Origin: Rebecca billardiae RCC1528
Lineage: Eukaryota > Protista > Haptophyta
Length of the DNA: 64,000 nt
Direction of reading: 5' to 3'
NCBI GenBank assembly: GCA_965240325.2
Contig: OZ251242.1
Span: 620,001-684,000, forward strand
In this document: piece by piece, positions 15,101-31,500 of the stretch
Layout: each line of letters starts with the position of its first letter
How positions within the stretch are numbered: the first letter of the stretch is position 1
Notes under the pieces: generated by a model
What the model saw: only the letters and a program-made list of their open reading frames with translations
What the model was told of the DNA's origin: nothing
The model's database searches: none
Made by a program: the position numbers and the translations under genes

Positions 15101-15620
15101 GCGCAGCACGCGAGCATAATTGCCCGCGCGTTCGTCGCGCCACCCGCGGCGCTGCGACCGGCTGGATGGGCCATGCCCGGCGGTCCGTGGTTTCACACGT
15201 CTGAGCTCATGATGTTTATTCCGCCTTACCAGTTCCCCGGTCACGCAGGGGCTTATCACAGTGTCCCTGCGGACGTCGTCAGCAGCGTCGTCCATGCGGA
15301 CGAGCGGGCGGTGCGGGAGTCGTCCCACACAGGTCACAAGTCAATGTCAAGGGCAAACGGCGGCCACCAGTAAACTGATAGGCCGGTCGTTAGACCAATA
15401 GCGCCGGGGGAAAACGTATATACGTAACCGGCGGCTTGCGTTCGCCTGCGGGCAGCGGCGAAAGCAATAGGATTAGGGGCCGAGCGCGCTCGTGCCGGTT
15501 CAGGGAGGGCAGGTACGACAGCGAGTAGTACCTGGTACTCGACCTCTCCTGGCGGTTGGATCCAAGCGCCTGGAAAGGAAAAGAAATCGTGCACGGAGGA
15601 AATTCGGGATTAATACAACA
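12159..15620 (-). mobile_element. Ty1/copia LTR retrotransposon A (internally deleted; RT-RNase H only)
   Basis: 411-bp LTRs at 12159-12569 and 15210-15620 (TG..CA, one mismatch seen), TSD GCTTG (12154-12158, 15621-15625), PPT GAGGGGGGG at 12570-12578. Confidence 0.95.
12583..15174 (-). CDS. Copia reverse transcriptase-RNase H ORF lacking Gag zinc knuckle, protease and integrase core
   Basis: [80 protein letters not shown]. Confidence 0.9.
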   Translation of the reverse strand: [863 protein letters not shown]

Positions 15621-15875
15621 GCTTGTGCTCGGCGAGCGCGGCGAGGAGGAAGGTGCGCGCTCGCGAGCTGGCGCACCTGGGAGTCCTCGCGGCCTCCGAG
15701 CAGAAAGAGCGCGTCGAGCGCAACGCCGCAGGTCGCACGGTCGCGATCTCGCGAGAGCGGTGGTGCGAGGGCGGGCCTCGCCATCGCGCGTTTCTGCGTC
15801 CAAACGCGGCCTCCGTAAAATCCGGATGGCGGTCAAGGGATTTTGCTGGTGCGCTATCCTCAGAAAAGTTTAATC

Positions 15876-15983
15876 ATATATATATATATATATATATATA
15901 TATATATATATATATATATATATATATATATATATATATATATATATATATATATATATATATATATATATATATATATATAT
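15876..15983. repeat. (TA)n microsatellite
   Basis: About 108 bp of pure TA. Confidence 0.97.
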
Positions 15984-28434: not shown

Positions 28435-28555
28435 ATTGCCATTATTAATACAGCACACCGCGAGTCGTGTCATCACGGTCCTGATGAATGGCACTCGTTG
28501 ATGACGATGATGATATTCCGATGATGATGATGACATTGTCATCGTCATATATCAG

Positions 28556-31500
28556 TGTCAAAGTCCAAGGCAGCCATCGGCGCCATTCCCCAGCTCGAGA
28601 CTTTAATTCCAAGGCGCTGAGCAATTTCAGCCGCCAAGCTACAGACTTTCATCATGCAATTCAATCGGTTTCACCATTCAAGAGCAAGGCCAACAGCAGC
28701 CATTGTTCATGCAAGTTACTACTCCAAAGATAAGGAGCATCGGCACACACATGAGGTCTTCGGACTACACATCCAAGGGTCCAGGGATTCTTCACCACTT
28801 GGGAAGGTACCCTGAACTGGACCAGAGACTACCATGCAGTCATCAGAACTTTCTTTTCATTTCGAGGAGACGTCCCGATCATCACAGGAAGCTTTCGTGC
28901 AATGACCCGAAGGCAATCAACGGAATTCCGAGAGCATTCCGACCGAGGGAAGCAGGCACACGAAGATTCCAAAATCTTCGATGCCACTTCCATCAGCTTT
29001 CACCAGACTGAAACATCAGTTACCTGAAACCACCGCCAGCAAGGGGGACGCCCCTTCGCCCCACGAAACACAGTAAGGACCGCACGACACGCGCGAAGCG
29101 CCAATCATGAGCTCACGGGTGCAAAACGTCGTCCGATCCTACGATCAGCGCAAGCGGACCCGCATCGATCGGCTCCGCCACCACGGGAGCCCCATGCTCC
29201 TCGACATTGACTTCGGCGACAACGCCGGATCGGCACGGAACGACACCGGCCGCAAGGAAGACATCGAGTTCCCATCCTCGCGATGGTACGACCAGGGCGG
29301 GAGCCCGCGTACCTTCTACGAGGACTGTCGCAGCTCCATCGAGAACCGCGACCGCCACGACGGACACTACCCGCGTGGCGAGCAAGGCCCCAGTCGCCAA
29401 GGCAACGGCGGCGGCCGGCATCACGCACCGACCGAGTACAAGCACCACCGGCGGAGCGACGACAACCTCGTACCCTACGACGGGACGTGGTTCGCGGAGA
29501 GCACAAGGCCATCCAACTCCGCGCATGCGCACTGGCACCCGCCCCACTCGCGGGGCCACCGATACCATCCCTCGCAACACAGCGAGGCCGAGCGCGCCGC
29601 GCCGCGCACCGGCGCGCGCGCAACTGAACCCATGACGATCCCCAGCGCGCAGGAGCGATCGTCGGCGCACGACAAGTACCCAAACGGCCCGCGGCCCTCC
29701 GGCACGCTGGGCTGGGACTACAAGCAGCCCGTCGTGCTCCCTGAGCAATGGCGAGTGCCCCCGTCCTCGCAGAAGGACGACTCGCCGTCGTCGCAGTCGC
29801 TGCATCGCGACGCTACGACACAGACGGAATCCCCGGACTCGGCGTCGCCGACTGCGACTGGACACGACCAGCATGGAGGCAGCAGCGTCGCAGCGCCGGA
29901 GGCGGGCGCGATGGCGGGCGACCTCCCGACCATCAGCGTCGTGACCGACTTCAAGGAGCCGCACAGCCACTACCCCTTCGACCCGGGCCAGATCCCTGGC
30001 GAAGAGCGGTCGGAGCCGTTCGAGGAGTTCGCGCCGCAGCTTGACGACCTCGCGCGCGGCTCGACCCCGCCGCCGGACGCGTTGAGCCTCAATGATGTCC
30101 TCAGCGTGCTCAAGGATGCGGCCATCGACATCAACGGACTCGTCTACCAGGATCCGATGGACATCGGAGACGACATCTTCACCATTGGAGGTATGTGCAG
30201 CGACCCGACTGACCGGCCCCAATCCATCTTGTGCTGCAACAAGGCAGCATGGGAACACGCTGCGCGCGACAAGCATCGCATGTCCTCATACCTGTGCACT
30301 TACCCCCTCCTGGCTGTCAGCAGTTGGTATGGTGTAGGCGAGACCTTCGATTGCATCATCCCGGAGATCCCGGCGCGCAAGAACATGGGCAACGGCATCT
30401 ACTGCAGCCAGTGGAGTGAGATTGACGACGATGATCCGAAGTCGCGCCAGCCATGCGACAATCAGTCGTGCACATCGATGCATTGCACCCTCGAATGCAT
30501 CATCTGTGGGATGGGCAGAGTCTGCAGCTACCGATGCGCAGACGCCATCCAAGTTCAGCATCAGCTCGAATGTGAGCAGATTATCCAGTTTGCAGCGATG
30601 AACGACGGGATTGACATCGATGATGATGGCATTCACTTCCACCGGCAGGACGGACCCGTCGCAGCGGCTGATCGCCGCAGCCTGAGCGTCGTGAACGACG
30701 CAGGCGCCAGCCTCGATGATATTTGCCCTTGGCGGCCATCCAAACGATGCACTATCTACTCGGGAGGCTTCATCGCAGCAGCCGCAGAGCGGCAAGGTCA
30801 CAACTACACAGTTGGAGACTATGTGCGGGAGAGGGACGGGCTTCACCAAAGCAAGTTCGATCTCATGTTCCATTGTAATGACGCACTCCTACAGCCAGGT
30901 GTCGCATGCTTCCTGCACAAAGAGTTCTATGGGCTGACTTCTGAAGCGAGCGAGGGACACTCGCCGGCTGACGACGGCCCACCTGGTGGTGTCACAACCT
31001 ACCCACCTGCCACGACTGGTGACGACAACAGCGCACAGCAGAGCAGCGATGGGGACGAGTCTTCTACATCGTCGGACATGGGCAGCTATGCCACAGCAGA
31101 GGACCACATTGAGACAAGCTCGCTCGACGCGTCACCACGAACGCGCAGAAATGGAGGCGAAGCTTGCATCACCTACTTGCCCGACGCACATGCAATGATG
31201 GCTGTGCAGACAAGCCAGCCTGGCGTCGGAAGCTACAAGCTGAATTTCTTCACAATCAAATCGAAAATGGCCATCCACGGAGCGATCAAGGACGCAGTCA
31301 CCGAGGTCAAGGCTTCCTTCAAGGGAAGAGCGACCGACACTACGTCGTCCATGGTCACCCTCGTCGAGGCCAGGCTCTCCGGATACGCGCTGGCCGAGGC
31401 CGCCGTGTGGACAGCCGAAAATGCTATTCGGGAACCGTACGCAACCGCATTCGCAAACATGGACGCGGACACCACCATCATGCAGATGACGATCGTCTAC

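Follow-up and report, generated by a model that had tools for sequence, protein, structure and literature searches.

Results

Within the window, the 64,000-nucleotide stretch of DNA from the GC-rich haptophyte alga Rebecca billardiae analysed here, lie three young copia-type LTR retrotransposons, A, B and C, whose LTR boundaries were fixed by aligning the 5' and 3' LTRs of each element. All three display the features of Ty1/copia elements, namely TG..CA LTRs, a 5-bp target duplication and a polypurine tract (here of the form GAGGGGG(G/C)G), and A and C also encode an RVT_2 domain. An Rfam scan over 12000-36500 returned chance matches only, located in simple repeat.

Element C lies on the forward strand. 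Its 5' LTR (28556-29107, 552 bp) begins TGTCAAAG, ends CCAATCA and is identical at 552/552 positions to the 3' LTR (35768-36319), and the target duplication is ATCAG. Directly past the LTR, the sequence from 29108 reads TGAGCTCACGGG, so that the palindrome TGAGCTCA (29108-29115) adjoins the LTR end at the primer-site position. A single gag-pol ORF of 2217 codons (29107-35760) starts at the ATG of this junction, and its terminal TGA overlaps the polypurine tract GAGGGGGCG (35759-35767), itself immediately 5' of the 3' LTR; the ORF carries a zinc knuckle at 983, DSGA at 1071, an SH3_retrovirus domain (residues 1445-1521) upstream of RVT_2 (residues 1716-1969, E 1e-48), and the motifs YVDD and ADCLTK.

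Elements B and A lie on the reverse strand. The 5' LTR of B (28124-28434) begins TGTCAAAGG, ends CCCTGACA and matches the 3' LTR (24975-25285) at 311/311 positions, with the target duplication ATTGC and the polypurine tract GAGGGGGGG (25286-25294); read leftwards from 28123, the sequence past the LTR is TGCTAGCACGG, with the palindrome TGCTAGCA (28116-28123) adjoining the LTR end. The B ORF (25551-28124, 857 codons from the junction ATG) has only a gag-like region, with no RT or integrase, and its residues 502-824 are 42% identical to residues 708-1005 of C. This family is abundant and recently active; 33 copies have an ORF of ~850-915 aa, and neither a longer nor an autonomous version was found. 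The 5' LTR of A (15210-15620) begins TGTTGTAT, ends AAACATCA and matches the 3' LTR (12159-12569) at 410/411 positions; the target duplication is CAAGC, the polypurine tract is again GAGGGGGGG (12570-12578), and the sequence from 15209 leftwards is TGAGCTCAGACG, with the palindrome TGAGCTCA at 15202-15209. The A ORF (12583-15174, 863 codons) encodes RT and RNase H only, with RVT_2 at residues 349-603 (E 7e-42), and its residues 314-846 are 39% identical to residues 1682-2206 of C.

The initial annotation held that A, B and C lack TGG at the primer site and that each site begins with an 8-bp palindrome, and the LTR-aligned boundaries bear this out: the sites start TGA or TGC, and in six families or subfamilies a comparison of 5' and 3' LTRs places the end of the LTR at the base right before the palindrome. 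We found four such perfect palindromes, all of the form TG-NN-N'N'-CA. TGAGCTCA occurs in the families of C (F1) and A (F5) and in F1b, TGCTAGCA in that of B, and TGTCGACA and TGCATGCA in two further families elsewhere in the genome, F2 and F6, respectively. Because all four words are perfect palindromes, every change in their centre is compensated. A separate entry, F3, is a truncated F2 copy.

The palindromes are also stable within families. Of 13 copies of family C, 11 have TGAGCTCA intact and two differ from it by single substitutions; in family A it is unchanged in 19/20 copies, and TGCTAGCA is identical in all 20 copies of family B that were fetched. In family A the next two bases (positions 9-10 past the LTR) vary among subfamilies (AA, GA, CG, AG, CT and AT) and the 8-mer is constant, which indicates that the constrained unit is the palindrome itself. 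At the base composition of this genome a random 8-mer would be a perfect palindrome with a probability of ~0.005, and the invariance among copies, together with the two extra families with other palindromes, places these words above chance expectation. The four self-duplexes are nearly equal in predicted stability (-10.7 to -11.5 kcal/mol); no consistent local RNA fold that places the palindrome in a loop was found.

In RT trees, a split supported at 89/95, and at 100/98 once more taxa were included, sets the RT-bearing palindrome families apart, and the site is restricted to one copia clade in this alga. TGAGCTCA is present in both sub-branches of the clade and is thus plausibly the ancestral variant. 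Two other families of the same genome, F4 and F7, have TGG-type sites, and that of F4, at the same position, served as a positive control, with an 11-nt match to the 3' end of the host tRNA-iMet (-19.3 kcal/mol). A word-based protein search of other organisms yielded only generic copia elements with at most 39% identity. An exhaustive search recovered clade members (P0123, P0132, P0136, P0139 and P0148) on contigs of 1.8-3.9 kb that end before the 5' junction, and two metagenome scans for this junction gave nothing usable.

It had also been proposed that the last A of the LTR and the following TG form an ATG in frame with the long ORF in A, B and C, and this was confirmed (at 29107 in C and 28124 in B). 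In B the frame is open upstream as well, back to an LTR-internal ATG at 28250. In A the junction ATG is followed by four codons and an in-frame TGA (MSSDV*, 15193-15210), after which the same frame resumes at the ATG at 15174; in a sister subfamily of A (~87% identical) this frame is open. C, B, F1b, F2, F4, F7 and the open F5 subfamily all read from the junction ATG into their long ORF without a shift of frame. The expected conservation of frame thus holds in most families but is no hallmark of the palindrome, since F4 and F7, with their TGG-type sites, share it. Among eight full-length LTRs, no other ATG was found in the last 85-397 nt. The priming site, whether palindrome or TGG, is thus predicted to be translated as codons 1-3 of the polyprotein.

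The combination of TGG and complementarity to a host tRNA that marks a canonical tRNA 3'-end primer site was not found in A, B or C. A whole-genome search detected no tRNA gene with a 12-nt complement to the sites of C, F2 or F6 or an 11-nt complement to that of B; every complement match outside the elements was fetched, and none was a tRNA. The host nuclear tRNA-iMet gene is at L031:1474-1546. The classical hemivirus site for this host, GGTTATGAGCCC, has only three occurrences in the genome (the nuclear tRNA-Met gene, the plastid tRNA-Met gene and one stray non-tRNA place) and is absent from the elements of this genome. A T-loop-anchored pattern for tRNA 3' ends that would fit the palindromes with one C of the CCA skipped gave one TGTCGA match, which was not a tRNA; the pattern needs a standard T-loop and missed the partner of TGG-type F7 too, so its negatives are weak. 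A D-arm-anchored pattern found no tRNA-Ala(AGC) gene that could serve as a partner for B.

Discussion

The start of DNA synthesis in LTR retroelements is a textbook subject with very few exceptions: self-priming in Tf1 and priming by half-tRNAs. We favour a tRNA-independent reading of the sites described here because four palindromes occur in one clade, with no tRNA partner and with variable bases after the palindrome; the earlier suggestion that covarying palindromes signify tRNA-independent priming or dimerisation is thus the one that the wider evidence favours. We would put at roughly 45% the probability that the palindrome is a self-complementary site of this kind, acting through a mechanism that we infer. 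A deep branch of Ty1/copia would have swapped its tRNA site for the 8-nt UG-NN-N'N'-CA at the point where minus-strand synthesis starts. The likeliest partner of the palindrome would be the same word carried by another genomic RNA or by a fragment of one, and the word would then double as dimer contact and primer site; one RNA would be cut just past the palindrome, and its 3' end would prime synthesis through U5 and R with the partner as template, in a scheme resembling Tf1 self-priming, but in trans. We infer each of these steps (the self-pairing, the cut and the extension of the cut end) from sequence. Because B is gag-like only and no autonomous version of it was found, other elements must mobilise it, and the characterised RT-bearing families carry palindromes other than that of B, which argues that self-complementarity outweighs the exact word.

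Several points count against self-pairing. Eight base pairs are short for a primer duplex, a cut past the palindrome would ruin that RNA as a template, so that an asymmetric dimer would be needed, and inverted LTR-palindrome-LTR by-products, a possible trace of palindrome-mediated annealing, were not found. The catalogue of nuclear tRNAs is also incomplete, with 63/561 candidates scored. One could envision a more explicit version, in which the palindrome joins two genomic RNAs, RNase H of the element cuts one RNA where the duplex ends on its 3' side and synthesis proceeds from the new end on the partner. The primer would then consist of R-U5-palindrome RNA from the element itself, and each of the four variants would serve as the pairing code of its family, so that co-resident families, and non-autonomous ones such as B, would not pair with each other's RNA. 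We regard this version as doubtful.

Alternatively, the primer could be a tRNA fragment. In hemiviruses such as Drosophila copia and yeast Ty5, the primer is the 5' half of tRNA-iMet cut in the anticodon loop, and the known hemivirus sites span this loop (GGTTATG..). The elements described here likewise belong to the copia type and lack TGG at the start of the site, and TGAGCTCA overlaps the core of the expected TGAGCCCA, the exact tRNA complement, which is one transition away from the palindrome. Pairing with an initiator-tRNA arm, as proposed in the initial annotation, is chemically possible for A and C and fails for B, in which the central four bases find no partner, and for F2 and F6. The host tRNA-iMet up to A35 in the anticodon reads UUGGGCUCA, and its arm GCGCGUUGGGCUCA ending at A35 forms 8 bp with TGAGCTCA, one of them G-U. 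On such a fragment the TGAGCTCA families A, C and F1b reach -19 to -22 kcal/mol; the duplex of family A is longer, with 13-14 bp and a one-base bulge (-19.8 to -22.1 kcal/mol), which is as strong as the verified F4 site, and the bases past the palindrome aid the fit above shuffled sequence (17-73 of 500 shuffles reach the same energy). A 5' tRNA-iMet fragment ending at A35 might thus prime A, C and F1b in a hemivirus-like manner from a plausibly ancestral word, the other palindromes being derived and either using something else or priming poorly. However, in C and F1b the bases past the palindrome do no better than shuffled ones (115/500 and 145/500), and in B, F2 and F6 the four bases beside the priming end are unpaired, at -7.8 to -11.1 kcal/mol (about -11 for B), so that three of the four palindromes misfit the tRNA, and B is abundant and recently active despite its poor fit. 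The LTR boundary would in addition require a cut after A35, the classical site is missing from the elements of this genome, and the preservation of palindromy through several compensatory changes is unexpected if the partner is one fixed tRNA. We therefore consider this reading improbable. Less plausible by far is priming by a tRNA 3' end with imperfect CCA pairing, for which the nuclear tRNA-Thr(AGU) gene at L021:1501-1575 (..GUGAGCU-CCA) offers a 9-nt match to TGAGCTCAC with one C omitted: a bulge beside the priming end is unfavourable, chance alone would be expected to yield a 7-mer match to some tRNA of the set, no comparable 3' end was found for TGCTAGCA, TGCATGCA or TGTCGACA (the sole match of the weak pattern not being a tRNA), and the palindromy would be left unexplained.

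Short palindromes are also the classical dimer-initiation sites of retroviruses. The palindrome could accordingly serve only in RNA dimerisation or packaging, or as some other cis signal where the ORF begins, with priming by another RNA, by protein or de novo. Ty3 initiation complexes dimerise via a 12-nt palindrome of the primer tRNA (PMC5371799), and as in these systems a short self-complementary RNA word near the primer site would link two genomes; the near-equal stability of the four self-duplexes agrees with such a role. The retroviral and Ty3 palindromes, however, are separate from the primer site or lie within the tRNA, whereas here the palindrome is the primer site itself: it sits exactly where the primer must, with nothing else between U5 and the ORF, and, since in every family the palindrome follows the LTR end without a gap, no other candidate primer site exists. 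Folding gave no consistent loop placement of the palindrome either, and we think it unlikely that dimerisation, packaging or another cis signal is its only function. Self-priming in cis, in which a downstream segment folds onto the palindrome and becomes the primer once it is cut, has been proposed for fungal GalEa, where a palindromic word replaces the tRNA site beside the 5' LTR (PMC5445492); in seven families or subfamilies of the alga, pairing with the ~95 nt downstream is no better than for shuffled sequence (49-267 of 300 shuffles reach the same energy), which makes a hairpin of this type very improbable here.

The 'Conserved Hairpin Site' of GalEa (Donnart et al. 2017, PMC5445492), the mechanism of which is unsolved, is nevertheless the closest precedent for the palindrome site. 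Both groups are copia elements with TGT..CA LTRs, a 5-bp duplication, one large ORF and no tRNA site (PMC5445492), and both have a short palindromic word at the boundary of the 5' LTR and the internal region whose variants (CTGATCAGT and CTAATTAGT in GalEa) stay palindromic. The GalEa word, however, has 9 nt and is palindromic only if the last A of the LTR is counted, whereas that of the alga has 8 (TG-NNNN-CA), lies wholly outside the LTR and, unlike that of GalEa, supplies the start codon. GalEa further has a conserved inverse-complementary CHSeq2 12-41 nt downstream, which forms the hairpin, whereas none of seven families or subfamilies examined here has such a partner, and the RT and RNase H motifs differ (YVDD and CRPDI here, QTDD and CQPEA in fungal GalEa, as compared by the motifs in PMC5445492). 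Tf1 of Schizosaccharomyces pombe is tRNA-independent (PMC5371799), its own RNA pairing beside U5 and being cut to give the primer (PMC5445492, discussion), and Tf1/sushi elements would thus share tRNA-independent priming with the elements proposed here. Tf1, however, is of the Ty3/gypsy type, and its 11-nt site, which is not palindromic, is complementary to the very start of the Tf1 transcript; in A, B and C we found no LTR complement of at least 7 nt to the 24 nt past the LTR, which leaves the site itself as the sole partner on the RNA, unlike in Tf1.

The families described here present a cleaner case of the GalEa puzzle, with a whole clade, a minimal 8-nt palindrome and four compensated variants, and the same genome offers very young, apparently active copies together with TGG-type families as internal controls. 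Non-autonomous partners carry a palindrome of their own. With the start codon built from the end of the LTR and LTR ends free of other ATGs, the internal region is fully coding, its first three codons set by the priming site. Taken together, these observations point to what may be a tRNA-free way of starting DNA copying. They also matter for annotation: where an LTR pipeline insists on a tRNA primer site, these families, which belong to the most abundant young elements of the genome, would be overlooked or ranked lower.

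Results

The host genome is eukaryotic, 72 Mb in size and very GC-rich (41 contigs, 2 of them organellar), and the long direct repeats of the window delimit three LTR elements and no more. With boundaries set by alignment of each 5' LTR against its own 3' LTR, element C has its LTRs at 28556-29107 and 35768-36319 on the + strand (552/552 identical; target duplication ATCAG), while on the - strand those of element B lie at 28434-28124 and 25285-24975 (311/311; ATTGC) and those of element A at 15620-15210 and 12569-12159 (410/411; CAAGC). The LTRs all have the form TGT..CA, and a polypurine tract, GAGGGGG(G/C)G, adjoins the 3' LTR in each element. 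C is a complete copia-type element (RVT_2, SH3_retrovirus, zinc knuckle, DSGA, YVDD, ADCLTK), and its single ORF of 2217 codons (29107-35760, +) spans the entire internal region, opening on the final base of the 5' LTR and closing at a TGA that overlaps the polypurine tract; the polyprotein of 2217 aa exceeds the usual copia length by ~700-800 aa, and its first ~700 residues have no Pfam match. A (12159-15620) codes for RT and RNase H only, and B (24975-28434) only for a gag-like protein that is 42-47% identical to C and to the family F2; the B ORF (~850-915 aa) is intact in 33 copies, and no autonomous version was found among 69 matches. A and B represent abundant, very young non-autonomous families between which the coding work is split and neither of which carries integrase, and they look dependent on each other or on C. 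By every feature tested, A, B, C and their kin are copia elements.

B and C stand head to head across a 120 bp spacer (28435-28555) that is AT-rich with GATGAT repeats, a repeat type that draws deep contig coverage in 4/4 public runs. Elsewhere in the window, a tandem repeat with a 246-bp unit occupies 19970-20575 (two units 79% identical plus an offset partial third, 61%), and 52000-62000 has a G+C content of ~87-92% and very long open frames on each strand, as many as 5 of which overlap in 51.4-56.1 kb. ARAGORN calls two over-long tRNAs, at 54535-54621 (87 nt) and 57595-57689 (95 nt), which are probably false.

Directly after the terminal CA of the 5' LTR, where the initial annotation had placed an unusual primer site, A reads TGAGCTCAGACG, B TGCTAGCACGG and C TGAGCTCACGGG, at the coordinates it gave. 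As that annotation held, none of the three has TGG at its start, and a perfect 8-bp palindrome begins all three. The word is highly conserved, TGAGCTCA being kept in 11/13 copies of family C (single substitutions in the other 2) and 19/20 copies of family A, and TGCTAGCA in 20/20 copies of family B. In family A, the two bases that follow the fixed 8-mer vary among active subfamilies (AA, GA, CG, AG, CT, AT), and these changes alter the encoded amino acid. One odd family A copy (locus L114, G000:C5:3007129-3007269) has TTGATCA inserted ahead of the palindrome, the last base of which is replaced by GATCA, so that a longer imperfect palindrome around GAGCTC results; this junction may be the trace of a priming accident.

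A whole-genome RT search recovered about seven copia families, and the 5' junctions of family representatives were reconstructed from both LTRs. The LTR ends ..CAATCA, followed by TGAGCTCATGGG, in F1b, a close relative of C; ..GCTATCA, then TGTCGACAAACG, in F2 (RT 51% identical to C); and ..CCCAATA, then TGCATGCAGCGA, in F6 (RT 31% identical to C), while F5, a longer subfamily of A's family, has TGAGCTCAATCG. The F6 LTRs are thus TG..TA rather than TG..CA (L071:3252-3944, G000:C8), and their last A together with the palindrome TGCATGCA still gives ATG; the identical 12-mer occurs in ~39 copies. Altogether, four distinct palindromes of the form TG-NN-N'N'-CA occupy the primer position in this genome. 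The two TGG-type families end ..CTCTCA, then TGGTATCGGCG (F4), and ..TTTGACA, then TGGCGGAGCC (F7). Over 11 nt, the F4 site matches the host nuclear tRNA-iMet (L031:1474-1546) at its 3' end, so a classical primer site occupies the same position as the palindromes in the same genome; no tRNA partner was found for the F7 site. In RT trees, F4 and F7 group with ordinary copia from other organisms, and the palindrome families make up two sub-branches, F1+F2 and F5+F6, that jointly form one side of a split (support 89/95, and 100/98 once database relatives were added). Because it is found in both sub-branches, TGAGCTCA may be the ancestral variant. The database relatives of this clade (proteins P0123, P0132, P0136, P0139 and P0148) lie on contigs that end before the 5' junction; two of them have TCGAGGGGGGG and then TGT at the 3' LTR, as here.

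The initial annotation had further noted that the last A of the LTR and the following TG form an ATG in frame with the ORF. This is borne out in C (MSSRVQN), in B (MLARCWE) and in A, where MSSDV is followed by a stop and the same frame resumes from ATG 15174. Since CA followed by TG necessarily yields ATG, the codon itself is no evidence; more telling is that it shares its frame with the long ORF of C, B, F1b, F2, F4, F7 and the open F5 subfamily. The rule is not without exception: most A-subfamily copies have an in-frame TGA at codon 6, with an ORF restart 12 codons on, and in the F6 copy read the junction frame spans just 60 codons. The final 85-397 nt of eight complete LTRs contain no further ATG, against an expectation of about one per 80-100 nt, and in F4 and F7 the open frame has the junction ATG as its first Met. 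The TGG-type families share this junction-ATG design, which is therefore a trait of the host's copia elements independent of the palindrome. It could account for the invariant outer TG and, via palindromy, the outer CA.

Discussion

The palindrome at the LTR junction is a real and strongly non-random feature, and as a priming site it lacks the features that define the canonical, classical hemivirus, Tf1 and GalEa-hairpin types. Tf1 is tRNA-independent, copia and Ty5 use half-tRNA priming, and Ty3 initiation complexes dimerise by a palindrome, through the tRNA (reviewed in PMC5371799). In A, B and C, no complement of the site of at least 7 nt was found in their own LTR, and Tf1-type self-priming from the transcript start is therefore excluded. 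The classical hemivirus site, which would be GGTTATGAGCCC for this host, occurs only in tRNA-Met genes and one stray place. The closest precedent is fungal GalEa copia, which lacks a tRNA site and carries a 9-nt word, which becomes palindromic once the final A of the LTR is included, and a downstream partner that forms a hairpin (Donnart et al. 2017, PMC5445492). In contrast to this conserved hairpin site, the elements described here have no downstream pairing partner: the ~95 nt that follow offer the palindrome region no stronger pairing than shuffled sequence does. Full-text searches of the literature returned nothing on sites of this kind in algae. A Logan contig (L128:60-130, run ERR12120951, P0245) from another organism's copia, which the RT tree places outside the palindrome clade, has TGATATCA, of TG-N4-CA form, immediately upstream of the first in-frame ATG; the assembly has merged its two LTRs, so that no LTR boundary can be assigned.

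The initial annotation had proposed that these sites could pair with an initiator-tRNA arm, an idea that is tenable only for the TGAGCTCA families. Host tRNA-iMet up to A35 reads ..GCGCGUUGGGCUCA, and TGAGCTCA can pair with it over 8 bp with one G-U. In family A, bases 11-15 lengthen the duplex to 13-14 bp, one base being bulged. The predicted energies for the TGAGCTCA families are -19 to -22 kcal/mol, on a par with the verified F4 site on its tRNA. The post-palindrome bases of family A fit better than most shuffles (the same energy is reached by 17-73/500), whereas those of C and F1b show no such advantage. Half-tRNA priming is a serious rival in the TGAGCTCA families, but in B, F2 and F6, the four bases beside the priming end are unpaired and the energies are only -8 to -11 kcal/mol. 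The whole genome was searched for complements of the sites, 12 nt long for C, F2 and F6 and 11 nt long for B, and no tRNA gene was found; all non-element matches were examined, and they are scattered and near chance level. The sequence TGAGCTCAC would complement tRNA-Thr(AGU) at its 3' end with one C of CCA skipped; the nuclear gene (L021:1501-1575, G000:C17) gives a 3' end ..GUGAGCU-CCA, with CCA next in the genome. None of the other palindromes yielded a comparable tRNA, and we treat this match as coincidence or, at most, a trace of ancestry.

The alternative put forward in the same annotation, tRNA-independent priming or RNA dimerisation, is favoured by the four self-complementary variants. 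Self-pairing of the palindrome is our preferred reading because self-complementarity is the only property common to all four variants, every central change among them being compensated; because the four self-duplexes are almost equally stable (predicted -10.7 to -11.5 kcal/mol); because family A keeps its 8-mer constant next to two freely varying bases; and because on genomic RNA the only complement of the site is the site itself. B, having no RT, integrase or autonomous version, must be mobilised by other elements, and since its gag-like part resembles those of C and F2 while its palindrome differs from theirs, the enzymes seem not to read a particular word.

In the simplest mechanism for self-pairing, two genomic RNAs would contact each other at the palindrome, one would be cleaved where the duplex ends on its 3' side, much as Tf1 RNase H cuts in cis, and the cut end would be extended on the partner RNA. 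Such priming would have its costs, as the cut RNA can no longer act as template and the palindromic ends might misanneal; inverted LTR-palindrome-LTR products, which would betray misannealing, were searched for and none were found. Another serious rival to consider is that the palindrome serves dimerisation only and that the primer is some other RNA or agent, which is not mutually exclusive with half-tRNA priming in the TGAGCTCA families. One could also envision a path by which a tRNA-iMet-arm site, TGAGCCCA, became the palindrome TGAGCTCA through one transition and, once a self-pairing site, was free to vary thereafter.

Taken at the level of sequence, these elements appear to represent a new form of tRNA-independent or non-canonical copia priming, and they are well suited to experiment.
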